Under the pieces are notes generated by a model that saw only the letters and a list, made by a program, of their open reading frames with translations, was not told the origin of the DNA and did no database searches. The position numbers were made by a program, and so were the translations under genes. A stretch of 63,017 nucleotides of DNA, the filler included, from Klebsormidium nitens (lineage: Eukaryota > Plantae > Klebsormidiophyceae), in NCBI GenBank assembly GCA_000708835.1. It is 8 parts of 8 records of this genome, joined end to end, with 100 filler letters (N's around TTAATTAATTAA, not from the genome) between each part and the next. Parts side by side here need not be neighbours in the genome. Positions count along the whole stretch, not along the records: positions 25,560 to 54,717 come from DF237790.1; 7 more parts are not named here. One strand, written 5' to 3'. Shown here piece by piece: positions 12,885-53,662 of this stretch; the stretch's first letter is position 1; each line of letters starts with the position of its first letter.

Positions 12885-12991
12885 ACAATCTCCGTGTATT
12901 CCAAGTTTTGACGAGCCAATTAAATCGCTCACAATATATCATAGTACACAATCTCCGTGTATTCTTAACAGATGAGCCAATCAAGTCGCTC
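12885..12991 (+). repeat. 63-bp tandem duplication with CCAAT motif
   Basis: ACAATCTCCGTGTATTC at 12885 and 12948, each followed by GA(C/T)GAGCCAAT..TCGCTC. Confidence 0.6.
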
Positions 12992-25580: not shown

Positions 25581-25757
25581 ACACCACGTAAGAGCGCAAG
25601 AAATCGCATGTAGCAATGGCAGAGAAAAGTGTCCTGGAGAGCGTGCAGAGCGTGAAGGAAGTCTAAAGAGCGTGAAGAGAGTGTGAAGAGAAGAGAGGAG
25701 CGTCAGGGGAGAGCGTGAAGAAGTTTGTTCAAGAGAGAGAACAGCAGGTCTGCCAAG

Positions 25758-32436: not shown

Positions 32437-34210
32437 GTAGTTCTGGGTTAGAAAGTATGGACCTGACCATTTTGTGGCACCCTAGGTACATTCATTTTGT
32501 ATTGTCTAAAACCGTCGTTCTAGGAAAGGATTTGATTGGCAGAGAACTAGCAGGACCGGGTTCTTGAGGGCGCGCACAACCCGTAGGGTCCGGCGCTTGC
32601 GACGGGAGGTTCTGCATGATCCTTCGCTCAATATTTCGTCGCTTTTGCCAGCTAGCATAAAAGCTGTACGGCCTGAACGGACGGTGGCACATGACGTCAA
32701 TCAAACGCATTAAAATCTTTGCCGTCCGATACAAGGAAAGTCCTTCAAAACTGGATCCGTACGGCTCGACTGACGCGTGTGAAAGTCCTGGAATATACGG
32801 TGATAATATATTGGGTATTCATATATTGATGAAAGTCACACATATGGCCGATAAGAGAAAGTAATATGGATCATCATTCATGCATACTGGCCAATGGCAA
32901 GCATATTGCTTGCATCCAACTTACAATTGGGACCTATAATCTAACCCAAACTTGGAGTCGTACTTCATCCCAAAAGCGCCCTTGACCTTGAACTAAACCC
33001 GTTTTTTCCAGGGATGATATATTGGAGTTGCAATATGGAAAATTGCTTGAGTAGAAACTAGACTGATACCATCTCGAACGCAATGATGAGATCGTCCACG
33101 ACGTATATGATCTTGCAATCCGAAGCCGCCTCTCTGCACACACGTAATTTCGGAATCATGTGGCCCAAAGTCAATCTGCCAGACCCGTCGGTACGAGTTC
33201 GGCCAATCAGAAGAAGGCACTTGGCCACAGACTGACATCGGAGGGCCAGCTCTGATTGGGCACTTGGTGATCGGTACCTGAGGAAATGACGAATTCCTGC
33301 AGCTCCGTTGGAGTACCGTCACTTTGAGGTGACAGCGGGGTAGGTATCTTAACAGGGGGGGGAGGGGCAGAGGTTTGGTATCTTGATCGAGGTCGGGGGG
33401 GGAGAGGGGCTTGAGGCCTCTGGCGGGGGCGCAACCCCCAGCTACTTTTTCTCAACTCAAATCATGCAAAACTCTCGTAACTATTTTGACCCAATTTGTA
33501 GCTTATGAGACCACATGCTTGAGGCCAGTTTTGACTGGCTAGGCCCTCCCGGGGGGGTGTTTGTGGCCCTCTGAGAAAGTGGCCTCAAGAATACGTACCC
33601 CGGTGCCACTTCAAAATGACGGTGCCCATACGGCCGATCCTGATATGGGGTCACTATTTTTGTCTGCAAATTGCGTTGTGTACACCGAGTTACATCTCCG
33701 CAGTAGTGAAGTTTTGGGCCGGCAAAATCTTTCTAAGACATTTACATCTTCATGGTGGCAATCTATCTTAACCATCGTGTCTAAATAGGTAGCTAAATTG
33801 GCTCATCGGTAACTCAGTGCGGAGGCGAAGTCAAATTCAAGGCTGCTTGGAGAATTTTGGACGATTCCAAAAACAGGTATGTTAGCATTGGTCGAGTTTT
33901 GAACACACTCAAAGACCAGATGATGCTTTCCCCTGATTGTTTTGGTTTTTCTAGGCACTTTTGGCGCATAGTTGCCACCACATGCGGAATTGCTTGTATT
34001 ACTAGAATAAGCACATACACCGGGCTTCGAACTCAGTTGTACACCTTCTTACATGTAGTGCGTATGGTACAAAGTGCGCTGACCTTCATTTCCTCTAAGG
34101 ATGTCATGCAATGTAGGCTCGAAATTCGATTAGGAACGGTAAGGAGGCTTGTGAAACATGTGCATCGGCAGAAGCATTTGAACTACATGATGACATGCTG
34201 CATTGAGTGT

Positions 34211-35159
34211 GCCGTGCGGCCTTGCCTCCCTTGCCGGCTGGCATCGAAAACGGTCCCGTGGCCTAATAACACACAACTATCCCTACCACCAACGGCTATG
34301 TACGGCCTACTTGACCTCAAACTATCCATAGCATGATGAAAATGAAAATAATGACCCTAATCGACCAGGCCTCTTCATTTGATGGCGTGTTGGTTCCCTT
34401 GGGCGCATAACACCTTGGCAGTATGGAGAGGTCACAAGCGCTGAAGATCACCTCCCGCTCTCTCATGCAGCATGCACATCACCAATCATGCAATGCTCAT
34501 GGTAATCTTGACTTCTCTCTTGTCCTTGGCTTCGGCTCCGATCATGCGCAACATATGAGCACTAACAGCGCATCTCCCCGCACTCCTTTGAAAAGGACTC
34601 GGAGAAAACCCTCCGCCACAGGTCGCAATCCTGCTGTCAATCAGCTCGCTGCACTATGCAATGAACGCTAGCGCCCTATCCTCGGTGCGCCCTAGCTATG
34701 GAGACTTACCAAAGAGAAGTAAAGGGATCACCTTTCCTCGGCCCTATATGTGCGGCCGACACAAGTCCTAATCATGGGCTGCAATGTCGCACCATAGACT
34801 CGGCCAGTTATCTCGGCGGTTTACCACTAACCATGCACTAGTGGCCTGACTCTACCTGCGGCCGAGCGCCAGGCTTGCAAGCCGGCCGCGGCTCGCCCTA
34901 TCGATGCCATGTGGCACTTCTGCGCCACGTGTCACTATCTGGGCACTACCCGGCACGGATAGCTCTCGTCATGGCAGCTGCCGTCCGGCCTTCCCTCCCC
35001 TGCCGGCTGGCATTGAGAACGGCCCCGTGGCCTAGTCACACACTTCTATCCTTGCCGGCCGGCAATGGCAGGCTATGTACGGCCCACTCGACCTCAAACC
35101 ATCCATGGCATGATGAAAATGAACAAAACGACCCTACTATCGACCGGGCCTCTTCATTT
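34211..35159 (+). repeat. ~175-bp diverged direct repeat (34211-34380 and 34980-35159) upstream of H3-like copy 1
   Basis: Shared GCCGT.CGGCCTT.CCTCCC.TGCCGGCTGGCAT.GA.AACGG.CCCGTGGCCTA and GCATGATGAAAATGAA..GGCCTCTTCATTT. Confidence 0.85.
34409..34967 (+). repeat. Dispersed ~550-bp repeat, copy 2 (copy 1 at 16803-17352)
   Basis: See copy 1. Confidence 0.85.
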
Positions 35160-36390
35160 CCCCCCCACTCGCTGGTTGCGGTCCCCGCGGCCCAAGCGAG
35201 TCACACACGCTGCGGCTCCGCTTCTCAGCACATTGGGCAAAGTGCAGGAATTGGAGGCCATTCTGCAGAAAGGTGCAAAGCAAAACGACATGCCTGCCGA
35301 GGATGGAGCAGAACAGGAGGAGGTTAGTGGGGGGAATGGGACCATGAGGCCAAGAACCGGGGTTGATATGTTCGATCTGCTGGCAGCAATACTGCCGGAG
35401 CCCTTTTTGGTTGCAGAAAAGGAGGACAAAAAACCGAGTTCGCATTATTGTTTGGATCCCAGTGCATGCTCAATATGGTGGGCTCTCATCTTGAGTATGT
35501 TATGCACCAGTGGAGAAGAAGCGCAATGGGGTAAAGAGCGCAAACCTCAAGGCAGCGGCAAGCGGCAAGAGAAAGGCACCGGACACTCAGACTACGCAGG
35601 CTGGCAAAGGTACCGTTATCAGGTTCACCTCGTTCCGCGGTTTCTACGAGCTTTGGTTGTCATGAAGTGTTGGATATGGATCAAGTGCACGCTCTGCCTT
35701 ATGGGCTTTTGCCAAGCTGTGCTTCCATGTTTCAAGCATAATGCATCTAGTTAAATCACTGCTCATTGTTTGAACCATGTTTCGACAAGCTCTAAGCGTA
35801 AGGCGCCGGAAGGCGCTGCCTCTGGCAATACCCAACCAGAGAAGAAGACGCGTCGGTACAAGCCGGGAACCCTAGCTCTTAGGAAGATTCGCAAGTACCA
35901 GAAAAACACGGACCCGCTCATCCCGCGACTCTCGTTTGCTCGTCTCGTGCGCGAGCTATGCGATGCAGAGACTGCCCGGCGGCCTGGTACCGACACAAAC
36001 GGCAAGATTAGGTATGCACTCCCACCTGGCTTGGACTGCCTAAGTGTTGATACGGCATGAGCTGGAGCAAGTGGCTAGATCGATCAACGTCTCCAAGTAT
36101 GGACGTGAAATATTCAAAAGTGAACAAAAATGTTTTGTTTTTGAGAATCGTGCGGTTACGAAGCTGTCCCCTTTTATCATAGTGCTGATCCGAGTTGGCA
36201 AGCTTACGTTCAGGTGGCAGGTGTCGGCGTTGGACGCTCTGTTGGAGGCAAGTTAGGACTTTGTCGTAGGGCTGTTTGGTGACGCGATCTTCTGCCAGTC
36301 GCACGGCAAGCGGAAGACCCTCCAGAAAAAGGACCCGGACCTAGCGCGCAGGATCCGCGGAATTCGGAACGAAGACAACACTCTGCCCTT
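35110..36390 (+). pseudogene. Histone H3-like (CENH3-type fold) copy 1; fold exons ~35790-36011 and 36214-36390+; premature TAG at 36254; 3' end lost in gap
   Basis: [41 protein letters not shown]|WQVSALDALLEAS*DFVVGLFGDAIFCQSHGKRKTLQKKDPDLARRIRG. The 5' exon start (~35110) is approximate. Confidence 0.85.
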
Positions 36391-37086
36391 NNNNNNNNNN
36401 NNNNNNNNNNNNNNNNNNNNNNNNNNNNNNNNNNNNNNNNNNNNNNNNNNNNNNNNNNNNNNNNNNNNNNNNNNNNNNNNNNNNNNNNNNNNNNNATACC
36501 ATACTTTTAACAGTGACACACGCCAGCCAAATTGTACAGAATGCAAAATCAAAAAATAGATTAAATGACTTGCTTGGATAAGGTCACACGATCATGGTAC
36601 ATGTAAGCACGTCGACATGCATCGTATAGTGAACGTTTGACATATGATTGGCCTATGTTGGAATCTCTTGGAAACTCCCTCATTGCATTTCGGGCATTTC
36701 TGGGTAGGGTCTCAAAAGACAAGCGGTGCCTGGCACGTACTATTATCTATTGACGACGCCTTGCTACCCTACTTGCAACTACCATACAACCTCTAGCATG
36801 AACGAAGTTTGCTGCTTGCACCGAATGTACAGCTGCGCACAATCACAGATTCTATGCTTCTAGAACGTCTTTGGGATCTCGTGCGCTGTTATGCTCACTC
36901 CACAACAGCCCGTGCTTCAAGTGCGGTTAGAACAGACATACACTTTGCTTTCTATTTTACCGCTTGTGATCTATGGACGCAATCGCTATGTACAATTTCG
37001 CACCCTTCCTAAAGTTTGCAGACGGCTCTTGTTGCACGCACCAATCAAGCCACTTTCTTCTCTCCTCTTGCACCTTCCTTGCACGA

Positions 37087-39485
37087 TCATGTTCCCCCCC
37101 GGCGCTTCTTTCCGGCTTCCTTATCCCCCTGGGATAATTCCGCCCCGGTCTTGGCCTCCTTCTCCGCTTTTCCCCCCTCCAATTCACCCGTTCTGGAGGC
37201 TTCGCCGCTCTCTCCTCCATGCGTCTCCTCTGCTTCCTTCTCCCTCTTGGTCCCCCGCTTCGACTTCTCTGCGCCTCCCTGGGATTCCTCCAACGTTCCC
37301 TCCACCACAGCTCGGCACGCTCCCCGGCCGATTCAACCCCTACGCCAGGCCCCTGCTTCGCTTTCGTCTCTTTGCGTTTCTCAAGTAGCTTCTCCGTTTT
37401 GGCCCCTCCTTCCGGCCCCTGCGTTGTTCTTTTCCCCTTGTCCTTCCCCTCCGACTTTTCAGCCCCTCGCGAGGGCCCCTGCGCAGTCCTTATAGCGCGG
37501 CTTGCTGCCTCGCTCTTCTCTTTCTCCTCTTGTGCCTCTCGCGCCTCCCGTTCGATCTGCTAGGGGGGCTTCCACCGTACTTTATATGGGTTTGGGTCAT
37601 AGACCTTGGTATCACGTCGGTCCACGACGTGCTCTACAGCCTCTTGCAATGGGAGTTTGTCGTCCTCATTTCGGATGCCTCAGATCCGTTTTGCAAGGTC
37701 CAAGTCTTTTTTCATCTGAGTCGTCCACTTTCCGTGTGCTTGGCAGAATACGGCGTCTCCAAACAGCCCCACGACGGAGTCCTGACTTGCCTCCAACAGG
37801 GCGTCCAACGCCGACGCCTGCCACCTGCAAGATAGTCACGTCATCAAGACATCAGTGCAAAGCTCGAACATTGTCTTGTTTATCTCCCGCATGATGTTCG
37901 GAACCCCGCCAATGTACCCGAAGTTTTGGAGAATAGCTGGTCCACGGCTGGAGTGTTGCAGAGTTTGCCACCCATGATATCCAAAATCTCAATGATCCGC
38001 CTACTTTCGGAGATGGCCCGGGCGCAGTCTTGTCAGAGCAATTACTTTCGGAAACCTGGCTGCCGGATCGGATCATGGGCCTAGAGCAAAGCAGACCGCA
38101 TGCTCCCAAAACCATGAAACTTAATAGAGGTTGAAGCTTTTCAGTCCCGGGCCAAAACAACGACCGCCCACATAATATAAAACGTACCTGAGGTCTTCTT
38201 GTTTCGAATACGTGTTGCACAGGCGCCTCACGATCCGACCGAACGTGATTTTTGGAATTAGGAAGTCCGTGCTCTTCTGGTACTTCCTGATTTCTCTGAG
38301 CGCCAAGGTGCCCGGCTTGTACCGCCGCGGCTTCTTCTCGGGCCGCAGGGGCGTGATCGCCGCCGTTGCTTTCCGGTTGTCTCCAACCACCGCCTTTCCA
38401 CTGCCTTCCTTCGCAAGCTTTTGCCTCCCCTCCCCAGCTGCCGGCTTCCCGACATCTGGCGCCCGTCGGTGCCACTTTCTTTTTTTGGGCACCCCCTGAG
38501 CCCTTCTGCCCCGTGGGCCCTGCTGCCTCCGGCTTGCCTGCAAGCGCCGCCACCCCAGCCACCGGCTTCTTACCCCCCACCACGCCCCAGACGCTTGATG
38601 GTTCCGACCTGTTGCTTTGCTTCGCGGCTTCTTTCGAGGCGGCTTGCATGTCTTGCCGGCCGTCACAAGTTCTCTGGAGGTCTTCCCAAGGCTTTTTGCT
38701 GCTGCCTTGTGCCTCCTATGCTGCTCCGTTGAATCCATTTCCCGACCACGCTCTCCCAACATCGAGTGCAGCTCCCCCCCTTCTTCTTCCTTTTCAACCT
38801 CCGCGGGCGCTTCCTCCCCTCGTGCATGGTGCTTGAACGTCATTTCGGCTTGCAGCTCCGATTCGGTGGGCGCATCGGGATCGTCTTCCCCCGCCGCATT
38901 CAAGTGGACATCCGCTTTTCTGAGGATTGTCTCCTTCAGGTTATGAGTCTTGGATGGTTTTTCATAGAGAGCATTGTTCCGTGCAATGTCGTCAAGCACA
39001 GCCCGGTATTTTTCTGAGCTCATAATGCGCCGCTCCTTTCGGACTCAGTCTTCCGGAGCCCCTTGCTCTGTCTGCAGGGTCTCTGGCGGAGGAGATTTCT
39101 CCCCGCTGAGCTCTGCAAACTTTGCTTGATAATGAGCTTTCGCCTTCGCTTTCTTCTTTGAGGACCACTTGTTTTGCGTAGCAAGAGTTTCCACGTATGA
39201 CAAATAATCCTCTAGTCCCCAATCGGCATGAAGGCCACACTCGTCTAGCTCTAGTGTGTCGATTGCAGTTTCGGACTCTCTCGGGACTTGCACTTCCCCC
39301 GGGTTCTCCGAGTTACCAACTTCATCCTCTTGCGCGGCCACCTTCTCCGCCTCCCGGCCCCGTTGCAAAACTTGGTCGCAGGCTGATGCGCGGCTTTTGC
39401 AATTGAAGGAAGCGTTGGAAGCTTGCGGCTGATCAGAAGCGGCCGCGCCCTTTAAGCGAATGAGACCACGAAAAATGACATTCAA
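37087..39485 (-). pseudogene. Histone H3-like (CENH3-type fold) copy 2, ~380-aa N-tail plus charged C-tail; intron 38187-37825; in-frame TGA at 39045 and several frameshifts
   Basis: [43 protein letters not shown]|WQASALDALLEASQDSVVGLFGDAVFCQAHGK, then shifted KKDLDLAKRI*GIRNEDDKLPLQ..RWKPP. ORFs 39045-39485 and 38121-39023 are in one frame. Confidence 0.85.
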
Positions 39486-39868
39486 TGTAAGGCAGACTTT
39501 TTACGAAGTTGTGATGGATTGTTCGATTTTAGGGTTTGCTTAGGTTTTCGCACGCTTGGCGAATGTCACGCTCCCGCTCGTTTACTTCATTTCGACGATA
39601 TAGCTCCTGCAGCCTATGTCGGTCGACTCAACGCTCACAATATCGAACCCGCTCGCAAGTCGACGAATAGCGGGTCCTACACCTACGCTGCAGCCTGTCA
39701 AGCTATCGAAATCAAACGCAAATTACGAAATGTCTCGGATTGACTTTCAAACCCGGCCCATGCACGGCCAAATTTCTGGTTGCTTGCATGGTACGGTTCG
39801 TTGGAAGTTGGAAGGCGCTCAAAACAGCCGCGAACATCCATTTGGCGTTGCTTCGTCTGCGCTTGATA

Positions 39869-42800
39869 ATGAGAGCAGCTGTCCGGTCTTCAAGCGACGA
39901 CATTCCAAACGAAGAGGTCAATGGGCTAGAGGACCCTGAAATTCTGTTGAAGCAAGCAAATCTAAATCAGCAAGAAGCGGAGAATTTGGAGGCGGCCGCA
40001 TATAGCAAGAGATCGCCCTTGGAAAAGGGACCTCTTGTTATGTCAATCCCCTTGCAGCATGTTGAAGAAGTTACCGAAGTGTTCAAAGGGGAGGAGGAAG
40101 ACCCCTTGCCTTTTGCGCAGCAGATTGCACTCGCAGAGCACGTCTTCAAAAAAGAACACGCGGCTTACGAAGCGGCGCAGGCTAGAAAGGCAGAGAAGCA
40201 CGCAAGAAGGGGAAGGCGGCCGCACTAGCCGCATTCCAGGCAGCGAGCAAAGCTGCTCCCCCTCAAATGAAAAAGGGCTCTAACAGAAAGTCCATTGCCA
40301 AGCTCGGGCCAACGGGAAGGCCGAGGCCTGGTGCTGGGGTGCTCCGCGGACTCCCGGCAGTGCCACCAGGGCGGAGCAGCAAGGGGAAGGGCAGCGCTCC
40401 AGAGCGAAGCGGCATCAAGAAGGCATCTGCACGGGAGACACCCACCAAGAAGACATCAGCAGGTATGAACTCTTGAACGCCTTGCAAATTGCCGGGCCTC
40501 TTTTGTCAGCTCAATGCCTTTGATTTCAGCATTCTAGCTAGCGGGTTGTATCCCAAACAGGTTGCATGAGTGCTTTATGGTAAACGGGCTGTAGAAGTTG
40601 AGCTCAAATGTGAGCGGTCCATGAGCGATCTAGGCATAGGTGCGAGCCAGTTGTCCCTGAACATGATGCTTGGGCGCCTCCCTAATACAGCAACTACCAA
40701 GATGTGATTAATGCTTTGATGCTTTCGCATTTCAGCGAGGAGTTTGTTCACCACTAGGTACATGCTCCCGTTTTAGAGTGGTGGGCGCTCATGTTGACAG
40801 TAATGCAAATGCTTTTTTGCAAAATACGAGCACCTCCTTGTTTGTTCTATGTTGAGTTTGTTCAAAAGCAGGTGCATGCTTGCTAAACTGCAAGATCATA
40901 AGGCTCTTTTTGTCAGCTCATTGCACTTGGTTTGAGCATTTTTGACGAGATGGTTGTTTCCCAAACAGGGTGCAGAAGCAGTTTCTGGTATATGGGTTGT
41001 AAAGATTGAGCTCCATTTGATCACTTCATGAGCGTCCTGGGCCTATTTTGCAAGCGGAGGGTCCCTAAAACACGGTGCTTGCGGCGTTTTTGGTAGACCA
41101 ACTGCCAACTGGTGGTCAAGGCAATGGTTTCATAGCTGCTCATGTTACCTCAAAAACTTACTATCCTCAAAGACCCACTACGTGACTGAGCGCCCTGCGC
41201 GCGCGTACGCGCGACAGACACCAACCGTGCAAACCCTGTGAATCGGAATCAATCATTGGTGGCGACACCCCGACCATACAAGCGGAAACGAGCATCATCT
41301 GATTGGCTAAAGTAAGTGGCGTTACTTCTGCGCGCCGAATCGGGAGGCGACACGTGGCGACCCTTCGGAACACTCTAGAATCAGAAGAAAGTGACCGGAA
41401 GCTTCGTAGTCTTCAATTAGAATCTAAAGATGGTACGCAGTAGATCACGTGGAACTAAGACCCAAATTCTAGAAAGAGCCGAGTAGATACGGGGTCGGTT
41501 GCCAGCATGACTTCTGGTCGCTGACTGCCCGTGATAGGCTAGATGGGAAAGACACGATCAAAAGAGAAGAGACAAGAAGAAATTGAACATTCTTTCCTGG
41601 AAGAGATAGGAAGAATCCGCTTGTGTGCGCCGCCTTGCAGCCACCAAGTGCTTGACCCACTGTTTTCTGTTTTCATTGCGCGCCGACCGACCCGCTTCAA
41701 CTATCTAAATGTTGGTGAATGCTTTTGATGAACTTTTGATTAGGTGGGCTTCCCGTGGGCTTGTTTGATGATATGACCAACCAGCCAGTCTGCATCATTG
41801 TTATGCATTAATGACCTATCTGCATCATGCACCTAGCTAGCATGTTTCCGAGCAAGGCGATTTCTTAAGGTAACACTCCAGCTAGATTGTTTGTTCAAAA
41901 CTACTAGTATTTGGTCCCATTTTAGTACGGTGGGCTCTTGTGTAGAACGTAATACAATTGGTTTATTGCAAAGTATAAGCACTTAGTTTGTTTCGCAGGC
42001 AACAAGCGCAAGGCGCCAGAAGGTCCAGCTCCCGCCTCCAAGCGTGATCCAAAGAAGCCGCATTGGTACATGCCAGGCACCCTAGCGCTCAGGGAGATCC
42101 GGAAGTACCAAAAGAGCACGGAGCCTGTTGTCCTCAGGCTCTCGTTCGGTCGGCTCGTGCGTGAGCTGTGCGACACGAAGAGAAACAAGAGGGGAAAGAG
42201 CTACGGCCTCAGGTTAGCATCTCAGTTGAAATCGAGTAGTTGACGTCTATTGTTCGATCTTACTACGTTGGGCTGTGATGTGGAGCTTCAAGCAGGTCGG
42301 AACGAGCAACTTGGGCAGGAATATGTGGTATCAGGTGTTTGAAATGAGCTGCTCACACATTGCCATTGAGCTGGCAGGTAAACAAAGTCGCAAATGCTTC
42401 CACTCTGATCATGTGGGCGACAATCTTGTTCACGAGGGAAGCGGCAACTCAACTAGCATGATTTGCGCAGCGAAAGTGTGCAGGTCTCTTTGCACTGGTA
42501 GAATAAACCAACTCCCGGAATCATATGTGCTTCTACACCTGTCCTTCCCAGTCGGACGGTCCAATTCCAAAGTGCGTAACAGAATGTGCATTTGGAAATC
42601 GTTCGGGGGAGGGATATCCAAGATTCAAGCATCCTAATCTGCTTTGAAAATCTTGCAGGTGGCACTCGTCCGCTCTAGACGCACTTTTGGAGGCGAGCCA
42701 AGACTTCATCGTGGGCCTCTTCGGAAAGCCATCTTCCGCGTTGCGCACGGCAAGCGCAAGACCCTCCAGGTGAAGGACTTGGACCTAGCGCGCCGGATCC

Positions 42801-43057
42801 GCGGGATCCGCGACGACAACAACAAACTGCCTCTGCAGAGGGAGGTGCAGCACGGGCACTCCTACGACAAGAGGGAGTACTATTCTCAGCTGCGTGCTGG
42901 CGCAGAGAGGTGGAAGCCGCCAAAGCAGATCGAGCGGGAGGAGAGAGAGGCAAGGGAACGGGAGCGCGCTGCCGCTCAAGAGGCAGCGCAAGGCGGGGCT
43001 GAAACGTTCAAGGCGGGTGAAGAGAGAGGGAAGCAAGCGGGGAAGCAAGGGAAATAG
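39869..43057 (+). pseudogene. Histone H3-like (CENH3-type fold) copy 3; exons 39869-40462, 41999-42212, 42659-43057; two -1 shifts in short A runs (~40204, ~42726), possibly sequencing errors
   Basis: [43 protein letters not shown]|WHSSALDALLEASQDFIVGLFG/AIFRVAHGKRKTLQVKDLDLARRIRGIRDDNNKLPLQ..RWKPPKQIEREEREARE. Confidence 0.87.
40498..41145 (+). repeat. Diverged ~240-bp duplication in intron 1 of H3-like copy 3 (~40498-40735 and ~40905-41145)
   Basis: Shared CTCTTTT(T)GTCAGCTCA.TGC, GGTTGT.TCCCAAACAGG.TGCA, TTGAGCTC, CATGAGCG, GTCCCT.AA. Confidence 0.7.
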
Positions 43058-44096
43058 GTGGTGGCATCTCGGGCAAGGGGCAAATATGGCGCGGGGCAAG
43101 GGCAATCCGAGTAGATTAGGTGCACGAATGGGGTCTAGAAAAGGGGCGGGGTCCGCTAAGGCGGAAGATGTGGTGACGGGTGGCCGGGGCCTAGGTGGCG
43201 GGACTCCCGAGAAAGGAACTGGTGGTGCTGGGGGAGTTAGTGGTGCGCCGGCGTCTGCTTTGTTTGTTTCGATTGACTATTAGTTTGTTGATCTGCCGGT
43301 TTCGCAAAAGAACGATCTTGGAGTCCCGATCTTGTCAGACCCGTTTTTGTATTGGGTTGTGCATGGGCAAGCTTTCTTTGTCGGCACATTTGCAGTAGCA
43401 TCATAAAGACCCAAGCAAGACAGGCAACTGCATTAAATACTTGAACAAGATTGATATGATTGACGCATCTAACGGCATCCTTTCGTTTCATTCTGTGCTT
43501 TATTTGTCATGCCGGTTCGAGTCGCAGTGGTTTTATGTCCGATCTAGTTGGTCATGTCGAGAATTGAGTGGTAATGACATGGACCTCAGTGTGCCCAGTG
43601 CACTTGTGACTTGGAGGAAGAATGAAGCCCTATAGCTTCATTCTTTCTTCTGTTCAATTGTAAGACTTGAGGAAGGGCGGCATCAGGTGTCCTTGCGAGT
43701 TGCATCATGGCCAGAAGCTAGTCTCAACGGTGACGCATGTGAGTGGTGACGATAGGAGCTCCCTGTGCACATGGCTCTGTTCTCTGTGACATGCTAGCGA
43801 AGCATGACTTTTTCACAGAAGAAAGAATCCAGAGCCAAGTGAGGTTAGGGAAAGTGTTCAGCTTGGGGGAGCTGTTGGAGCAGCAGCCGTTGCAGGACGC
43901 GACGGCGCTGGAAAGGGTTGGCAGGCAGAAAGTCTGCGACCTGCGGAGGGCGGACCCCGCTGGGGTTGCGCCAGGAGTGACGGTGCTGCGGCACGGGAGA
44001 AGGGGAGCGGAGCGTCTGCGCACCCCAGGGAGACCCGCGAGCTTAGGGAGGCCCGAGGAGGTAACGGTCACGCGATCAGTTGCTGGTTGATGACGA

Positions 44097-45206
44097 ATGG
44101 GGGACGATCTTAGGCAGTTAGTTCAGCGGATCAGGGGTCTCAAGCCAAGTGAAGTGGAGAACGCGCAGGGTTTCATAGACGGTTGGAATCGCTTCAAGCT
44201 GCGGTTTCCACGTGGGTTCCCGGAGGATAAGCTGTGGGTTAACTTTGTTGCAAACCACCCTGAGAGAGCAAAGTTGTTGGGAGTTACGGTCAACCCCAGG
44301 CAGCACTGGCCGTTTGTCCAGCTGCGCTGTCCCTCTCCTTGCCCGCTGTGCCACAGGCCGGAGAGAGACGAGCAGAGGATACGGGAAGCGGTGGAACGTG
44401 CTGAGGCAGAGGAGAGAGAAGAACGTGCTAGGAAGCAGTTGTCGGCGCGGCAGCAGCAGGAAGAGCGGGCGCTCAGGGAAGCTGAAGAGCTGCGGCGCCG
44501 GGACGAGCTGACGGCGGTGCACGGGCGCCGGTTTGAGCAACGGGAGGAGGCGTTGGAGACTAAGAAGGAGTTCCGGAAGAAGGAGGAGAAGCGGCTTGCG
44601 GAGGTGCAGGAGCAGTTTGCGAAGGACGTGGAGAGAAACCCTAGGCTAGCGGAGCTGCTAGAGGCCACGCAGAGGTTCGTCGCAAGGTGGGGGCCGTACG
44701 TGGACGGACACAGCGGGGTACCAGAGGCCAAGCTTTGGCTCGCCTACGTAGCCAACGACCCGAGAGGAGCGAGCGGGTTTGGAGCAAAGGTCAGCTTAGC
44801 GGAGCACCTCCCGCAGGTGGTGAACGGGTGCTTGACCGCCTGTCGCTTGTGTGACCAGGTCCAGTCGCTGGAGACGCGTCAGCAGGTGTGGAACCAGACG
44901 CAGCAGCTGGTGGAGCAGGCGGCGAGGGCGAAGGAGCTGAGGGAAAGGGCGGTTGCAGCAGAGGCGGCCAGGGTGCAGGCGGAGTCGGCCAAGAAGAAGC
45001 GGGAGCGGAAAGCGGAGGCGAAAGCGAGGCGCATAGCGGAACAGGGAACGGGTAGCAAGGAGAAGGAGGGCGAAGAGGCGCGCCCCGCTTGGCTGGAGGA
45101 GGAGCTCCGGGGTTACTGTGAGTGGCACTCGGTGCACGGGTGGCTGCTGGCGCTGCTGGACACACGCCTTGCGGACCAGGGACGCGGTGTGGAGTGCCTG
45201 GACTGA
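44097..45206 (+). CDS. ORF1 / Gag N-terminal region with two copies of an unrecognised H-C-C-C domain separated by coiled coil
   Basis: PEDKLWVNFVANHP..GVTV..HWPFV..CPSPCPLC (aa ~23-85) aligns with PEAKLWLAYVANDP..GAKV..HLPQV..CLTACRLC (aa ~190-252). Confidence 0.65.
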   Translation: MGDDLRQLVQRIRGLKPSEVENAQGFIDGWNRFKLRFPRGFPEDKLWVNFVANHPERAKLLGVTVNPRQHWPFVQLRCPSPCPLCHRPERDEQRIREAVERAEAEEREERARKQLSARQQQEERALREAEELRRRDELTAVHGRRFEQREEALETKKEFRKKEEKRLAEVQEQFAKDVERNPRLAELLEATQRFVARWGPYVDGHSGVPEAKLWLAYVANDPRGASGFGAKVSLAEHLPQVVNGCLTACRLCDQVQSLETRQQVWNQTQQLVEQAARAKELRERAVAAEAARVQAESAKKKRERKAEAKARRIAEQGTGSKEKEGEEARPAWLEEELRGYCEWHSVHGWLLALLDTRLADQGRGVECLD

Positions 45207-45224
45207 GCGGACGGCTGGTGTTTC

Positions 45225-48200
45225 ATGCCGGTGGAAACCAGGGGGCAGTGGGCGGAGAGGTATCAGGCGGTGCTGCGTGCGGAGGCAGAGAGCACAGAGG
45301 AGTCAGGGGTGGGCCAGGAAGGAAGGGTTGAGGCTGGGAAGGAAGTCCAGCCGGTTGTGAGGGGTGAGCAGGCCGTGGGGTGGTGGGAGGATCCATTTGG
45401 GGAGATGGCAACATGCGCGGGGGCTGATGGGAAGCTTAGGTTCTCGGGAAAGAAAGGCGAGGGGTTGACGATTAAGCAGTTCGAGTTAATGGTGAAGGGG
45501 AGCTTGCTGAGCAGGTTTAAAAAGCTCCAGAAAGACGTCGGTGAGCCGATCACGGGCCCTGAGTTCCTGGGCAACTACTGCATCTTCCTTGGGGAGTTCC
45601 TGGACAACCCCGCCAAGCTAGCCCACGAGCGGGAGTACGAGGCGCACTGCCGGGAAACGGACCCGGTGGCAGCCCTCCTAAAGTCCCTCAAGAGGCATTT
45701 CAAGGACCATAAGGAGGGCAGGGCTCACGAATGGGTGGCGTTCAGGAGGGAGCCGGGGGAGGAGCTCCCGTCGCTGCTCTTTAGGCTCCAAGGGCTAGCG
45801 CTGGACCTGGAGAAGCCCCTGGAAGACAAGGAGCTGGTGGGGAAGTTCGTGGCAAGCCTCGATCGCCGGTTCGCGGAACAGACTAACACGCAGGCGATGT
45901 CGTCGACGGTCGAGACAGGAGGGGCCTACACGCTGGATGAAGCGTATGAGGCCGCGCTGATGGTGGCCGCCGGCAATGCGTGCATGAAGATCGCCAGGGA
46001 GCTGGTGCCCAGGAGTAGCGAGGTCCCCCGCGCGTGTTGGGGAGGACGGGCAAGCGGGGCGCACTCGGCACTGCAGCTGGAGGAGCCCGTATACGCAGCG
46101 GCGGTGGCCGCTCCCGTGGCACAGCAGGGGGGCTCGGGGGCGTGCCACAACCGCGGGGAGACCGGGCACTACAGGAACGCGTGCCCCCATCCCCCGCAGA
46201 ACAGCGCTGGGCGGGGAGGCGGACGGGCTGGACGCGGCGGCGGCGGACGCGGCCGGGGACGGGGCCCCTGTTGGGTCTGCGGTGATCACGACCACCAGGC
46301 TGCTCAGTGCGCAAAGCACGCTGCCCCTGCCCCTCAGCCTCAGCATGCTGCGGTGGCGGTGCGTGCCCCCCCGGCATGTGGAGACGGGAGGGGAGTGCTG
46401 GTGTCGGGGGCAAAGTTGAGGGCGTTCCAGGAGTGGAGGGCATCTTCTCAAGCGGCGCTGGCGACGCGGGCCGACGAGGGGGAGGAGGAGGACTTCGAGT
46501 GGGACGAGCAAGAGTACGCACTCGGGGCGGTTGCGCTCCCCGTCAGCGAAGGCACGCCAAACAACATGGCGGCGGCAGGAACTAGGGCGGGGGCGGAAAA
46601 GGCGAAAGCCACCAGGGCAGCGAAGCGCGGACCAAGGGAGGCGGGACGGCAGGAAGCGCAGGTGAACAAGGGCGCTGTTGGGAAAGTGGGGACGGAGCAG
46701 ATCGCGCGGCCAATGGGGGACGGGACAGAGGAGGCGCTCAGGGCAAGACGGGACAAGGGGGCGGCGAAGGAGCGGGCCGCGAAGCTGCCCGATCATGGGC
46801 GGTACGTCGTGCCACAGGGGCTGCACCGGCTGCCGGCGGGGTTCGCGGTCAGGGACGCGCAGGTGCCGCAGGCCGCTGGGACTACGCGCGTCAGAGCCGC
46901 AGGAAATGCGCGCGCCAGCTCGCCCGACGTGGTTCCCAAACCCACTCATCCCAGCTCCTTTGAGACCGTGCAGGCCCCATACCACCTGCCAGGTAAGACA
47001 GCCCCGGCCCCTTTCCAAAACCAAGGCCGTGGGCAATCCCAAACCTTGCAGGGCCTGGTAGCGCCTGGCGCGGGGGTCCTGCCACAGCCGGTGCTGACCG
47101 GGGGGGTCCACCTCGACGTGGGAACGTTCCTAGAGCTGGCCCAGCGCGCGGACATGAGCATGGCGGACGTGGTGGCGCTGACTCGTGGGCAGAAGGCGGG
47201 CGTGGCGCCGCCGCAGGCCCAGGTCACCGCCGGTTCAGGCAACGGGCGCAGCCTGTCACCAGCGGCGCTCAGGGCCCAGGAGGCAAGGGAGCGGAGCGCC
47301 GGCGCGGCGCAGCAGAGCGAGGGGCAGACGCCGGGGGGGGCTGGGGCCAAGGAGATCTCAGGACCCATGGCCCAGTGGGTGGCCATTCTGGAGGACTCAG
47401 TCAGGCGGGCACCAGAGCCGGCGGGGGTGGCGGTGGGAGCGCCCAGCGGGTCCATGGAAGGGGCAGATGACGAGGGATATGCAGACGCGGTGGTGTGGGC
47501 AGACGTCCCGGTTGAAGAGGCTCCTGAGAGCTCGGCGATGGGGGAAGGTCGGGGGCGGGCCAGACAGCGGGGGCAGTCAGACAAGGCAATGGCAGAGGCA
47601 CGGCAAGAGGAGGAACTGAGGGCCCACGCAGAGGAGCGGAGCATCAAGGACAGGGTATCCAGGCAGGACGCTGCGCTGGCAAGGAAGCTGGTGACAGGTG
47701 AAGCGATGGCCAAGGGGATTGACCCCAGCGCAGCGGTCGAGGCCCAGGCAGCGTTGGGGGGAGAGCGTGGGGAAGCGGAAAAGGGGAAGGAGAAAGAGGG
47801 GGACAGGGGCAGTAGGGCAAGCTTGGAGGAGGCGCTGGGTTGGGAGAAGCGGGTAGCTGGCGGGGCGAAGAAAGGCAGCACGCCGCTGGCGCCTGTCACA
47901 TTTCAGCCGCACAGAGCCACGGGGCATAGTAAGGAATTGGAGGCGGATGCCTACGCGCACGCGGCGATAATGGCGTGCTTCGCCGACGGGCGCCCGCTGG
48001 TGGAGGCTGGGAGGCGGTCGCAAGTTGAAGGGGTTCCAGACTGGGTGGACAACAGCAAGGGAGCGGTGCGAGTGGCGGCGCCCCAGGGACTGGTGACACC
48101 GCAGCGGGTGCTCTTGGACGGCGGGAGTTATTACACGATGGTGGGAGCCAGGCTCAAGGAGCAGCTCGGGCTCGGGGATGCGGATATGGACGCGGGGGGC

Positions 48201-48566
48201 CAGAAAGTCCACACAGCGACGGGTAAAGTGGAGTCCCTGCAAGGCGGACTGACAAAAGAACCGGTGCCGATCATCCTCAATGCAAACACGCCGGAGGAGT
48301 TGACAATCTGCGAAAAGGTGGCTTTCACGGGGTCAACAGGGTATGACCTCTTGATCGGCATACGGGCGGCGTACCCGTCTGGTCTCTTGGTGGACAGGTG
48401 GGCAGAGACGGCAGTCTACAGGGCGGACTGGCAAAGGCAGGGCGTGGTGGTGGGGAAGTTGCCGATGAAGCTGCATCAAGAGCTGGGGGCGGCATGGACA
48501 ACGGTAGGCAAACGGGGGAGGAAGGGGGTGGCGGGCGTGGCGCTCGCTTGCTGCCTCACCAAATGA
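45225..48566 (+). CDS. Gag (retrotransposon gag core, two zinc knuckles) plus aspartic protease
   Basis: FRREPGEELPSLLFRL gag-core-like segment, degenerate CHNRGETGHYRNAC, CWVCGDHDHQAAQC, protease VLLDGGSYYTMV and YDLLIG. Confidence 0.8.
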   Translation: MPVETRGQWAERYQAVLRAEAESTEESGVGQEGRVEAGKEVQPVVRGEQAVGWWEDPFGEMATCAGADGKLRFSGKKGEGLTIKQFELMVKGSLLSRFKKLQKDVGEPITGPEFLGNYCIFLGEFLDNPAKLAHEREYEAHCRETDPVAALLKSLKRHFKDHKEGRAHEWVAFRREPGEELPSLLFRLQGLALDLEKPLEDKELVGKFVASLDRRFAEQTNTQAMSSTVETGGAYTLDEAYEAALMVAAGNACMKIARELVPRSSEVPRACWGGRASGAHSALQLEEPVYAAAVAAPVAQQGGSGACHNRGETGHYRNACPHPPQNSAGRGGGRAGRGGGGRGRGRGPCWVCGDHDHQAAQCAKHAAPAPQPQHAAVAVRAPPACGDGRGVLVSGAKLRAFQEWRASSQAALATRADEGEEEDFEWDEQEYALGAVALPVSEGTPNNMAAAGTRAGAEKAKATRAAKRGPREAGRQEAQVNKGAVGKVGTEQIARPMGDGTEEALRARRDKGAAKERAAKLPDHGRYVVPQGLHRLPAGFAVRDAQVPQAAGTTRVRAAGNARASSPDVVPKPTHPSSFETVQAPYHLPGKTAPAPFQNQGRGQSQTLQGLVAPGAGVLPQPVLTGGVHLDVGTFLELAQRADMSMADVVALTRGQKAGVAPPQAQVTAGSGNGRSLSPAALRAQEARERSAGAAQQSEGQTPGGAGAKEISGPMAQWVAILEDSVRRAPEPAGVAVGAPSGSMEGADDEGYADAVVWADVPVEEAPESSAMGEGRGRARQRGQSDKAMAEARQEEELRAHAEERSIKDRVSRQDAALARKLVTGEAMAKGIDPSAAVEAQAALGGERGEAEKGKEKEGDRGSRASLEEALGWEKRVAGGAKKGSTPLAPVTFQPHRATGHSKELEADAYAHAAIMACFADGRPLVEAGRRSQVEGVPDWVDNSKGAVRVAAPQGLVTPQRVLLDGGSYYTMVGARLKEQLGLGDADMDAGGQKVHTATGKVESLQGGLTKEPVPIILNANTPEELTICEKVAFTGSTGYDLLIGIRAAYPSGLLVDRWAETAVYRADWQRQGVVVGKLPMKLHQELGAAWTTVGKRGRKGVAGVALACCLTK

Positions 48567-48869
48567 CAGGACGCGGGGGGGGCTGGGCCAGGGAGCGAGG
48601 AGGACACAGGGGACGGGCCCAGCTCCCCAACTGGTGGGAAGGAGGGTGGGGGGACCCTCAGGCAGGAGCGGATGAGACGGTGGAGGGGGAAAAGATGGCC
48701 GCGGGGGCCGGTGCTGGACGTGGCAGCAGAGGCGGAGAGGGCGGTCTGGCAGGCAGTGGGGGAGAAGCGCAAGAAACCAGGGGATCCAAAACAGGTCCCC
48801 TTGCCGCAGCTGGAGGGGTGCAGGCCAATCAACTGGAACGTCGCCGCCCCACTCCCAGCAGACAGGCCC

Positions 48870-49810
48870 CTCCGAATCTTAGAGCTGTTCGCCGGGGCTG
48901 GCGCTGCTACGCAAGCTGTAGCGCGGCTGGGGTATTCTGTTGGGGAAGTCATCGCGTGCGAAAGGAGGGGAGCAGCACGGCAGGCCCACTCCAGGGCGCT
49001 GCAGCGCCTCGCGAAGGAGTTCCCAAACCAGGTCAGCCAGCGGGCGGGGGCGCAGCTTCACCATCGCCTTCCACAAGACGTGCAGCTGGTGACGGCGGCG
49101 CACCCTGGGGCCCATCGACCTGGTGGTCGCGGGTTGGCCATGCCAGCGCGGCAGGTGGCGGGGGTGGTTTGGACGACGCCAAGTCAGGACTGTTCGTCGA
49201 GCTCCTGCGAGTCCTGGGTATACTGCAAGGGCTGCACAGGAAATGGGGACGAAGCCTCGGGTACGTGGTTGAACACGTGGCAGCGGGGTTCGACCGCAGG
49301 CCAAAGGTGCGGGATCACTACGCAGCTGTGCGGGGGCTGTTAGGCCCAGAGCTAGTGTTTGACGCCGCGCAGGTCGGGTCCCGGGCGCATCGGCTTCGTG
49401 CCTGGTGGACTAACCTGGAGGGGATGGCGCTTCAGCGCGCCGCCCTCAGTGTGCAAAAACGCCCAGAGGGGCTGTTCGTGCAACAGATTCTAGGGGCAGG
49501 AAAGCAGGCAAAGCCGCCCAGAACGCCTGGTGTTGCACCTTGGGCCTGCGTGGAAAGACCTGGGGAGCCGCGGCGGGCCCTCAACATGTTCGTCAGCTAC
49601 GGGGGGTCCTACGCGTTTTCAAGAGGGGGGAGCGGCGTGCTGAGATGTGTTGACCAGACGGGCAGGGTATCCTGGGAAGAGCCGACGGCGGAGGAGCGTG
49701 AGCTGTCTATGGGGTACCCGCGCGGGTTTACAGAGGTGGAAGGACTCAGCGAGCAGACGCGCAGAGAGCTCCTTGGGCAGGCGATGGACTTGAACGCTCT
49801 GATGTGGCTG
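48870..49810 (+). pseudogene. C5 cytosine DNA methyltransferase domain (DNMT3-like motif set), split over three frames
   Basis: Motif I LRILELFAGAG (48870); II ACE; IV IDLVVAGWPCQ (49114-49146, third frame); GLDDAKSGLFVELLR; VI YVVEHV; VIII DAAQVGSRAHRLRAWWTNL; IX EERELSMGYPRGFT; X RRELLGQAMD. Confidence 0.9.
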
Positions 49811-50339
49811 CTCGCAGCCTGCCGAGAAGGTGGGCGCTGTCGAATTAGAGCGGCCAGCTCCCAGCTGGGAGGGGTAGGGATCAGCGGTACGGCAGCCACG
49901 GGCAGCAGGGAGCCGGCGACGGTGGGAGGAGGTATCCCAGCAGGCAACGGCCCAACGCGCAAGGCGGCGGTTGGAGGTAGTATCCCAGTGGGCGCGGCAG
50001 GTGTGCGCGCAGCTGGTGGACTGGACAGCCCCCCGGTGCGGAGTGGGAGCACGGACGGGGGGCCAGCAGGCAGTGTCCCAGCGCGCGAGGCGGCGGCTGG
50101 AGGTGGCGCCCCAGCAGGCGCGGCATGTGAGCGGTCAGCTGGAGGACCAAATAGTCCCTCGGCGCAGGCCAGGAGCACGGGCGGGGGGCCGGCGGGCGGT
50201 AGCCCAGCGCGCAAGGCGGCGACTGGAGGCAGGGCCTCGGCGGGTACGGCAGGTGCGGGCCCAGCTGGAGGGGAGGACGTGAGGGTCGGAGCGGCGACGG
50301 TGGGCGGCGTGAAAGCAGAGGGGGCAGCGGACGGATGGC

Positions 50340-52534
50340 TGGTTGGTGCGCAGCTGGAGGAGGCTGAGAAGCAGCGGGTGGCGGCGGTTGTAGAGAAAAA
50401 CAGGGACGTCTTTGCGTTCTCGCTCGAGGAGATAGGGGAGTTCAAGCTCTTTGAGGTGCAGCTTGATCTAAAGACGGACCAGCCAATCTACGAGCGCCGC
50501 CGGAAGCACAGTCAGCGGGAATGGGAGTTGGTGGACGAGAGGTGCGCGGAGCTGGAGAGGGCGGGCATCATCGAGGAGTGCGACTCCGATTTCGCAGCCA
50601 ACTCTGTCATGGCGGCCAAGAAGGATCCTGAGGGCAACTGGAAGCTGGCCCGTTTCTGCACGGACCTGCGAAGGGTGAATGAGCAGACTGCCCAGGACCG
50701 CTATCCCATGCCCCTGCCGGAGGAGGTGCTGGAGGGGCTGGGACACGCCAAGTTCTACTCCACCATCGACATAAGGGGGGCGTTCCACCAACTGGTGGTG
50801 CGGAAGGAGGACCGCAGAAAGCTGGCGTTCTGGTCTAGCAATAAGCTGTACTGCTGGAAGCGCTGCCCCTTTGGTGCGCGGAACGCCAGCGCCTGGTTCC
50901 AGCGGGCGATCGACCGGGCGCTGAGGGGATGCGAGGCTCTTGCGCGCAGCTTCGTTGATGACCTGCTCGTGGCGGGGGGGGAGACTGCGGAGGAACACAT
51001 GCTGCTGGTTCAGCAGGTGTTCGACCGGCTGCGGGAGGTGGGGCTGAAGTGCCACCCAGAGAAGTGTTGTTTTGCTGCGGAGTCGGTGGAGTACTTGGGG
51101 ATGTGGCTGCGGCCTGGCGTCGTCTCCCCCCATGTGGCGAAGGTGGCGGCGATTGCGGCCCTGCCCAGACCCACGGACGTGACTTCGGTGAAGGCGTTCT
51201 CGGGGGTGGTGAATTACTACAGGCAGTTCATCCCCGACTGCAGCAGGCTCCAGGCGCCTCTGAATGAGCTAACCAAGAAGGGGGCGCTGTGGCGCTGGGG
51301 CCAGGCACAGGAGGATGCCTTCCTCGCGCTGAAGGAGGCGCTGCAGGAGGACCCGGTCCTGGTGCTGCCCAAGAGAGGCAGGCCCTTCAAGGTGCGGTGC
51401 GACTGGAGCAAGCGGGGCGTCGGCGGGGTGCTGCTGCAAGAGGACGAGAGCGGGGCGGAGAGGGTGGTGGCATACGGCAGCAGGAGTTGCAATCAGGCGG
51501 AGTCCCGCTACAGCAGCTTTGAAGGGGAGCTGCTTGCGGCGATGTACTTCGTGCGCCTGTGGCGGCAGTACCTCTGGGGGGAGCGCTTTGTGCTGGAGAG
51601 CGATCACCAGCCCCTGAAGTGGATCCTGACGAACACCAAACTCACGGGGAAGATGGCCAGGTGGGCATTGATGCTAAGTGAGTTTGACTTCGAGGTTGTC
51701 CACAGGCCTGGAGTGGACAACGAGATGGATTGTCTGAGCCGTTACCCGCAGGCGGGGCAAGAGGACTGCGCAGGGGTCAGGCAGGAGGGTGACCTGGAGG
51801 AGAACCCACCCCTTGTGTGGCCGGCGGCGATTTGTCTCGCCTGGCAGCCAGCGCAGACGGAGCCGGGGCGGTCAGAGAGCGGTCCTGTGGAGAGGACAGC
51901 GCCGCTGGCGGACGTGTGGGCGGACGCGGCGTTGCTGGCGCTGCTAAGGGGAGGGGGGTACCCTGCTGGCGCGGACAGGCGGAAGCGCGACAGGCTGCAG
52001 CACAGGGCGCGGGGCTATGAGTGGCGGGGCACCCACTTGGTCAGGCAGGCGGCGGGCAGCGTTTGGGTGGTGCCCAGGGCAGAAGTGCGGGACAGGCTGG
52101 TGCGGGACGTGCACGAGCGGGCGGGCCACGTGGGGGTCAAGAAGACCCATTCCCTGCTCCGGCCGCACTACTGGTGGGTGGGGCTGCTGACGGACGTTTC
52201 CCGGGTGGTGCGCGGGTGCGAGGCCTGCGACAGGGTGAGGGCCACTTTCAACGTGAAACACCCGACGCTGCACCCCCTCCCCATCAAAGGCCTCTTCTAC
52301 CGTTGGGGGCTTGACTTCGCGGGACCGCTCCCCCGGTCAGCCCAGGGCAACCAGTACGTGCTCGTGATGGTTGAGCACTTCAGCAAGACGATCGTCCTGG
52401 TCCCCACTGTGGACAAGGAGCCCAGCACTGTGGCGGCGGTGTTCACTCGGGAGGTGCTCACCAGGTTTGGGGCGTGCGCGGAGGTGGTGACGGACAGGGG
52501 GGGGAGTTTGCAGCGGAGTTCCAGGAGTGCCTAG
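50340..52534 (+). CDS. pol: Gypsy RT - RNase H - integrase N-half (3' part of ORF 48398-52534)
   Basis: RFCTDLRRVN, DIRGAFHQL, CPFGARNA, FVDD (50951), FKVRCDWS..GVGGVL, EGELLA, SDHQPL, ARWALMLSEFDFEVVHRPG, HERAGH..CEAC, GLDFAG, VTDRG. Confidence 0.95.
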
Positions 52535-53382: not shown

Positions 53383-53662
53383 GAGTGGGCCCCGCGCAGG
53401 CGAGGGGCCCAGGAGGGGATGATAGCGTTGGGATCGACACGTAGGTGGTCAAGCCATGCCGAGACATTTTTATGTCGAGATGCATAGGCGCGACATTATC
53501 TCGAACAAAACTCCTTCTCCGAGTCGCGCTGCTTGTGCCATATCCAAATGTAGCAATGAGTAATGCCGCGAGCATCAAATACATATTACGATTCTGTTTG
53601 GTAACTTTGTAGATTCTGCGCCTCCCCCCGAGTTCTTCAATGTCAAGATCGACGTCTCCGCG

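Follow-up and report, generated by a model that had tools for sequence, protein, structure and literature searches.

A decaying cassette of three CenH3-like histone H3 genes with giant tails and a C-terminal extension in the alga Klebsormidium nitens

The length of the histone H3 C-terminus, which adjoins the H3-H3' interface near the dyad, is among the most fixed features of chromatin, and in other lineages the short C-terminal tail of centromeric H3 (CenH3; CENH3 in plants) binds CENP-C. Some plants carry two CENH3 genes, and Drosophila Cid1-5 are dispersed single genes that are kept intact, none of them known to have a long C-terminal extension. In Dothideomycete fungi, a canonical H3 coding sequence lies inside a defined hAT element and has been amplified and degraded by repeat-induced point mutation (PMC6710886). 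Here, we describe three H3-fold genes clustered at 35.1-43.1 kb of a 63,017-nucleotide stretch of Klebsormidium nitens DNA (GCA_000708835.1; parts joined with filler letters, hereafter the window), in the part that comes from DF237790.1. Copy 1 is on the + strand, copy 2 on the - strand and copy 3 on the + strand. We know of no earlier description of a conserved 90-200-residue C-terminal extension of H3 under purifying selection in three old paralogues.

We consider it likely that the window contains one copy of a three-gene cassette belonging to an H3 variant family known so far only from Klebsormidium, and that all three of its genes are transcribed pseudogenes. The family would combine a CenH3-like fold with giant tails and a selected C-terminal arm, its cassette having been copied within the genome. 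Its members resemble plant CENH3 (HTR12) in that their H3 fold lacks Q68, carries W at F84 and has a lengthened loop 1, and in that the N-tail is divergent and free of ARTK. Unlike plant CENH3, they have N-tails of about 345 residues (against about 50-60 in the angiosperm CENH3 compared), HGKRKT in place of HAKRVT, and 90-200 further residues after RIRG, where plant CENH3 has R(L/I)GG and only a few residues more; the family is also multi-copy, mostly pseudogenised and not nested in angiosperm CENH3 in our tree. Drosophila Cid1-5 likewise represent several diverged CenH3-like genes with differing N-tails in one lineage, but there the genes are dispersed, intact and without a long C-extension, and here they form a cassette with one. 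By analogy only, macroH2A is also a core histone with a large non-histone part at the C-terminal end of its fold; it is an H2A carrying a folded macro domain, whereas the Klebsormidium proteins are H3 with one charged helix followed by disorder. The fungal hAT-borne H3-like genes (PMC6710886) are similar in being H3-derived, present in many copies and mostly inactivated, but structurally they differ throughout: the Klebsormidium family consists of three old, selected paralogues with introns and new tails, for which no transposon frame was found.

Pfam PF00125 matched both halves of the fold exons (E from 3e-14 to 1e-9) and H3 chains of the Protein Data Bank (PDB) matched the fold at 1e-11 to 1e-15, which places it in the H3 superfamily. 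Residues that contact H4, DNA or the second H3 in the nucleosome (R69, R72, C110, H113, K115, R116, T118, D123 and RIRG) are kept, as scored in an intact copy-2 gene on another contig, L002, and in the window copies outside their lesions. A previous sequence-only reading of this DNA had reported three H3 folds with the motifs LSFAR, ITFGR and LSFGR in copies 1, 2 and 3, respectively, loss of Q68, W at F84 and a longer loop 1; all of these were present where it had placed them. Q68 is replaced by A or G, and loop 1 is longer by 2, 6 and 10 residues across the three copies. With A or G at Q68, W at F84, no ARTK and a length of about 640 residues in the intact member, against about 136 in canonical H3, which stops right after RIRGERA, the proteins are not canonical H3.1 or H3.3. 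Further residues are those of angiosperm CENH3 and not of H3, namely LIP for LIR where alpha-1 begins, E/Q followed by an acidic residue in alpha-2 ((E/Q)D) and KKD-x-(D/E)-LA in alpha-3 ((M/Q)KKD(L/M)(D/E)LA).

An unrooted maximum-likelihood tree of 28 rows and 96 columns was built with CENH3 rows from angiosperms and none from algae or bryophytes; for the tree, as for the estimates of selection below, fold exons were joined with X or N at each lesion. The family formed a clade of its own (95/88), its folds not scattering among canonical H3, and the other two groups were angiosperm CENH3 (99/93) and H3 together with fungal Cse4 (97/92). Because three groups meeting at one unrooted point show no sister pair, descent of the family from CENH3 rather than from H3 is compatible with the tree, though unproven.

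These genes might be read as the true centromeric histones of the alga, which would have several CenH3 paralogues, the window holding dead duplicates. All three CenH3 sequence hallmarks and the angiosperm-type residues are what one would expect in this case, as are the fast-evolving N-tails and the split (97/92, unrooted) that sets H3 and Cse4 apart from both the family and plant CENH3. However, the sister relation is not readable from the tree, and in searches of PDB sequences the fold scored no better with CENP-A or Cse4 than with H3.3. Furthermore, a short CenH3-type C-terminus is lacking: RIRG is followed by up to about 200 residues, whereas the angiosperm CENH3 sequences in the alignment have only some five residues beyond R(L/I)GG, the last two mostly PW. 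It would also be odd for an essential gene to exist as many decaying copies amid transposon-rich DNA. We regard this explanation as unlikely. A word-based search with the last 135 residues of copy-2-type exon 1 returned ordinary H3 or Cse4 proteins only and no Klebsormidium CENH3, and the best 120 matches to an Amaranthus CENH3 query were all angiosperm CENH3, with none from Klebsormidium. We found no account of the family in the literature on Klebsormidium CENH3, H3 variants or centromeres, and Klebsormidium is not among the species listed in the supplements of van Hooff et al. 2017.

One feature that sets the family apart from plant CENH3 is its C-terminal extension. In all three window copies, the sequence runs on beyond the fold (IRGIRNEDNTLP in copy 1, I-stop-GIRNEDDKLP in copy 2 and IRGIRDDNNKLP in copy 3), and RWKPP, QIERE and a charged tail lie further downstream in copies 2 and 3, as had been proposed. 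The extension is real; it is common to the three paralogue types and bears the mark of historical purifying selection. Its IRGIRNxDNKLPLQxAVEHG segment and its RWKPPKQIEREAREARE motif are both conserved, a linker that varies lies between them, and a disordered tail rich in K, E and G completes it; the RWKPPKQIEREAREARE motif begins a predicted 28-residue charged helix. AlphaFold models were built exon by exon. In the exon 1 model, 244 of 396 residues fell below a predicted local distance difference test score (pLDDT) of 50, and a single helical hairpin (residues 58-93) was predicted with confidence. The exon 2 model predicts alpha-2, alpha-3, a short helix over LQEAVEH and a 28-residue helix at residues 87-114 (pLDDT 79-94), which starts from the conserved KQIKREAREARE motif and gives way to disorder. 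The 345-residue N-tail of the intact L002 gene is mostly disordered, rich in K, E, G and A, and without ARTK. Intact members would replace H3 in the nucleosomes of some specialised chromatin, where the tails may serve as docking or charge-modulating arms extending from the entry/exit DNA and the H3-H3' four-helix bundle.

We observed low ratios of nonsynonymous to synonymous divergence (dN/dS) between the three paralogue types, both in the fold (0.15-0.24, with dS of 1.1-1.4) and in the C-extension from RIRG to REARE (0.15-0.41 where dS was computable, dS being above 1 or saturated), the latter retaining 45-62% amino-acid identity between types. Low dN/dS at such dS indicates that the family was functional for a long time, and the proteins, including their new C-terminal part, appear to have been kept by selection long after the three types split. 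Between cassette copies within one type, the fold gave a dN/dS of 0.42-0.66 and the N-tail one of about 0.8, which indicates recent decay or drift of the sampled copies; the fast tails bear out the earlier description of the family as rapidly evolving. The split of the three paralogue types is old and was followed by several duplications of the whole cassette, most copies of which are now decaying.

The three-gene arrangement, with copy 1 forward, copy 2 reverse and copy 3 forward, recurs on two further K. nitens scaffolds of strain NIES-2285, L001 (DF237929.1) and L004 (DF237441.1), and partly on L002, an ENA contig. As the whole arrangement recurs at other loci, the cassette must have been duplicated as a unit. 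All cassette pairs among these four loci, window included, are 82-88% identical, and this holds even for the two K. nitens loci of the same assembly. In the DNA-like sequencing run X1, exact contigs had a depth of 13-23 and contigs 90-95% alike a depth of 116-290, which suggests roughly 5-15 further close cassette copies in the genome. Within the window, the DNA of the three copies is alike in the fold exons only (70-78% in a self-comparison of the piece), their introns and tails being unalignable.

Among 5.8 billion proteins, only two were close to copy-2 exon 1: P0002 (GAQ92323.1, a K. nitens 'histone H3') and P0001, encoded in an ENA assembly. When 1.84 billion representatives were searched with HMMER, P0123 (GAQ89160.1, K. 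nitens) and the more distant P0022 (a Logan contig) were added. Across both searches the N-tail was common to these four proteins only, all of them Klebsormidium-type, and the family is thus lineage-specific, as had been suspected. The remaining representative matches (E = 1e-14 to 1e-17) were rejected as relatives, most being mispredicted proteins with two to four canonical H3 units. GAQ92323.1 and GAQ89160.1 belong to the same family, the same cassette and the copy-2 type; they are automatic models of damaged copies, both annotated just as 'histone H3', one with the second fold exon deleted and the other entering a gap. No usable match was obtained in an atlas feature search with the N-tail, no relatives in JGI metagenome contigs scanned with C-extension peptides, and no match in an exact-protein look-up of the window's 300-residue open reading frame (ORF).

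The copy-2 gene on L002 is open throughout. Its exon 1 corresponds to P0001 (396 residues) and its exon 2 encodes 244 residues ending in KKRRGGT and a stop, giving a protein of about 640 residues with a 345-residue N-tail, the fold and a 196-residue C-tail (K+R 24%, D+E 21%, G 13%). On L001, copy 1 has a GC donor and a TGG to TAA change, and copy 2 is without its second fold exon. On L004, copy 1 has a stop after KRKTL, copy 2 has in-frame stops and then a gap, and copy 3 has a frameshift in fold exon 1 and an intact last exon. L004 also has a 2.25-kb insertion (11901-14154) in the C-tail region of copy 2, at window position 37501/37504, which holds an annotated 184-residue gene without a Pfam match. 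The window and L004 share 84% identity across copy 2 and the N-tail of copy 3 (37500-41141), against 92-93% across the copy-3 fold exons (41876-43503) and the flank (53496-54717); the L002 contig shows greater divergence in the copy-2 N-tail than in the intron beside it and the 3' spacer. This mosaic pattern of identity could reflect gene conversion between cassettes or fast tail evolution.

In copy 1, the N-tail coding region (35110-35789, +; exon boundaries tentative) includes an ORF at 35065-35754 that is collinear with L001 and L004 at 83-88%. Fold exon 1 (35790-36011, +; Pfam Histone E = 3e-14) reads KRKAPEG...RRYKPGT...LSFAR, a 17-residue loop 1 and IR, ending in the AG of a split Arg codon. 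It is followed by a GT..AG phase-2 intron (36012-36213, +) and by the visible part of the last exon (36214-36390, +), which translates as WQVSALDALLEAS, a stop and DF...RRIRGIRNEDNTLP before entering an assembly gap (36391-36495); past the intron the full reading is WQVSALDALLEAS, stop, DFVVGLFGDAIFCQSHGKRKTLQKKDPDLARRIRGIRNEDNTLP. A direct repeat of about 180 bp (82% identity; 34210-34380 and 34979-35159) lies upstream of the copy 1 start and overlaps it.

Copy 2 comprises exon 1 (38188-39381, -), which encodes the N-tail of about 345 residues and the first half of the fold, a GT..AG phase-2 intron (37825-38187, -) and a last exon (37087-37824, -; aligned to the intact L002 exon 2) with alpha-2, alpha-3, the C-extension and the K/E/G-rich tail. 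Past the intron it reads WQASALDALLEASQDSVVGLFGDAVFCQAHGKWTTQMKKDLDLAKRI, stop, GIRNEDDKLPLQ...RWKPP and a second stop. Copies 2 and 3 are indeed head-to-head, but their start points are about 490 bp apart rather than the 380 bp first given. The spacer between them (39382-39860), presumed to be a divergent promoter for both genes, is multi-copy in run X1 (depth 211-267).

Copy 3 has an N-tail exon (39861-40462, +; ATG at 39869), an intron 1 (40463-41997, +) that houses a cryptic exon (40969-41171, detected in RNA) and a 723-bp solo long terminal repeat (LTR; 41143-41865), a fold exon 1 (41998-42212, +; NKRKAPEG...WYMPGT...LSFGR, a 13-residue loop 1 and LR), a GT..AG phase-2 intron 2 (42213-42658, +) and a last exon (42659-43057, +) encoding alpha-2, alpha-3, IRGIRDDNNKLPLQ, RWKPPKQIEREEREARE, a charged tail and a stop. 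Its translation past the fold intron is WHSSALDALLEASQDFIVGLFG, a frame break and AIFRVAHGKRKTLQVKDLDLARRIRGIRDDNNKLPLQ...RWKPPKQIEREEREARE. The phase-2 GT..AG intron thus splits an Arg codon (AG/G) before the W in all three copies, at the very junctions proposed earlier (36011/36214, 38188/37824 and 42212/42659), and its position is also kept in a distant relative, L003 (TTGAG/GTGAGC).

Every window copy carries disabling lesions, in keeping with the earlier view that the cluster is decaying. In copy 1, CAG is changed to TAG at 36254-36256 (EAS-stop-DF), within helix alpha-2. Base-by-base alignment of copy 2 with the intact L002 relative revealed CTG replacing the start ATG (39381-39379), a 3-nt insertion that creates a TGA (39047-39045) and two out-of-frame stretches between compensating indels (about 38961-38910 and 38601-38455). 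Copy 2 further has a TGA at 37682-37680 (RI-stop-G), a TAG at 37562-37560, after RWKPP, and a +2 frameshift near 37310. In copy 3, a 1-nt deletion at 42727/42728 (LFG/AIF) breaks the frame in alpha-2, and the N-tail exon has a frame break near 40205, where paralogues in X1 are without 2 nt. The C missing at 42727/42728 is present in paralogous X1 DNA contigs and the same deletion is found in an RNA contig of run X3; therefore, this deletion is not an assembly slip. A ciliate-type stop reassignment, with TAG read as Q in copy 1, was considered and dropped, as the other stops include TGA and long ORFs in the standard code are plentiful.

The window is collinear with L001, L002 and L004 on either side of the gap at 36391-36495. 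In these relatives the same interval measures about 410-430 nt (L001 12255-12683, L004 15126-15539 and L002 3027-3430, up to the contig end), which shows that the gap is under-sized and that the letters flanking it are not continuous. In all three relatives the interval encodes ...LPLQAAVEHG...RWKSAKQIEREARE... and a stop, the peptide reading ...LPLQAAVEHGLGHKREKV.YEPGK.DEK(R/K)(W/R)KSAKQ(I/T)EREARERATK... before the stop. Since this is the rest of the last exon, copy 1 has the C-extension of copies 2 and 3, and the gap conceals both this extension (VEHG...RWKSAKQIEREARE...stop) and the 3' end of the gene.

Logan contigs of four runs were placed on 37060-43059, three of which (X2, X3 and X4) we guessed to be RNA. 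The copy-3 N-tail exon was matched exactly by contigs in X2, X3 and X4, which show a GT..AG joint at 40462/40969, and the 42212/42659 joint predicted for copy 3 was found spliced in a contig of X3. An X2 contig from a paralogue joins a 40462-type donor to the 41998 acceptor, connecting the N-tail exon to the fold exon in frame; it comes from an L004-type copy, and its 30 loose letters match L004 exactly. Copy 2 was represented by a single low-depth exact contig in X3. The outcomes that the sequence-only reading had named as refuting it did not arise: the folds group in a clade of their own, the family includes an intact gene, that on L002, and it gives rise to spliced RNA.

Several observations weigh against our interpretation. 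That the Logan runs are RNA is guesswork, the fold exons are covered at low depth (1-10), and the dominant copy-3 splice in the window, 40462/40969, ends in a stop codon. No window copy is intact, the copies on L001 and L004 are damaged too, and copy 2 on L002 is the sole intact gene found anywhere; mistakes in assembling K. nitens could account for some of the L001 and L004 indels. For recent divergence, dN/dS is near 1 and hence gives no sign of selection on present-day copies, and the copy number from k-mer depth is a rough figure.

The cassette could also be the cargo of a mobile element, an H3 gene having been captured and amplified by a transposon, with copies that would be of no use to the host. 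Its copies are numerous, about equally diverged and mostly decaying, k-mer depth is high, transposons abound in the surroundings (a copia gag, a 10-kb gypsy-type element and a solo LTR), and the hAT-borne fungal H3-like genes (PMC6710886) set a precedent. However, the unit shared between loci, whose left end lies beyond the contig ends, has no transposase, reverse transcriptase or terminal repeat, and no common termini of the kind expected of a transposon-transduplicated H3 were found; likeness to L004 extends past the cassette into the right flank (53496-54717, 93%). The retroelements are later insertions whose sites are empty in L004. Captured fragments would also sit poorly with three ancient paralogue types whose dN/dS is about 0.2 and whose spliceosomal introns are conserved, which speaks for long selection on the proteins. 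We find this account distinctly improbable. The sequence-only reading had proposed that the genes were either locally amplified or transposon-carried; amplification is borne out by the cassettes on L001, L004 and L002 and by k-mer depth, whereas transposon carriage is not.

Among the neighbouring elements, the 723-bp insert in copy 3 intron 1 (41143-41865) is bounded by TGTTACC...GGTAACA, with CTC duplicated, and L004 does not have it. The insert is probably the solo LTR of an active retrotransposon, and it matches the end of a 4982-nt contig present at a depth of 80-290 in the RNA-like runs. A GC-rich (65-70%) gypsy-type element of about 10 kb occupies 43503-53496, with TG..CA ends and TTAT on both sides, at a site empty in L004; no long terminal repeats were found when they were searched for in it. 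One of its ORFs (44097-45206) codes for a 369-residue coiled coil that is internally duplicated, another is gag-like and matches a zinc knuckle weakly, and the element also encodes reverse transcriptase-RNaseH-integrase and a C-terminal PHD finger. Within the long retroelement ORF, three tandem copies with a 126-bp period (49937-50278; 72-77% identity over the 90 bp aligned in each) specify a segment rich in Pro, Ala and Gly that separates an unassigned N-terminal part from the reverse transcriptase domain. An ELFAGAG-like motif in this element had raised the idea of a DNA methyltransferase, for which Pfam gives no support. At the left edge of the piece, 25725-26606 is a copia-type gag ORF (Retrotran_gag_2 and two zinc knuckles).

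A bolder version, which we rate as a long shot, is that the family is a 'macro-H3', a histone derived from CenH3 and equipped with giant tails and a selected helical arm at its C-terminus, whose cassette travels and multiplies with repeat-rich and possibly centromeric DNA. If so, repeats linked to centromeres would bring along histone genes of the centromere type, and centromere drive would have a substrate built in. Finally, the notion that ordinary H3 genes decaying by chance produced the three folds, with coincidentally similar tails, for which the stops and frameshifts in every window copy might be cited, is refuted by the hallmark alignment, the tree and the dN/dS of fold and C-extension and is highly improbable, as the derived residues, intron position and C-extension motif are common to three types and four loci, the family is a separate clade whose fold shows a dN/dS of 0.15-0.24 at saturated dS, and an intact relative exists.

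Our preferred reading remains an H3 variant family, so far found only in Klebsormidium, of which the window holds one decayed cassette. Studies of how land plants arose use Klebsormidium as a reference alga, and with its CenH3 signature this family bears on the diversification of centromeric histones and on histone genes amplified in repeat-rich DNA. The intact L002 member and the distant relative P0022 provide concrete constructs for tagging and nucleosome reconstitution.

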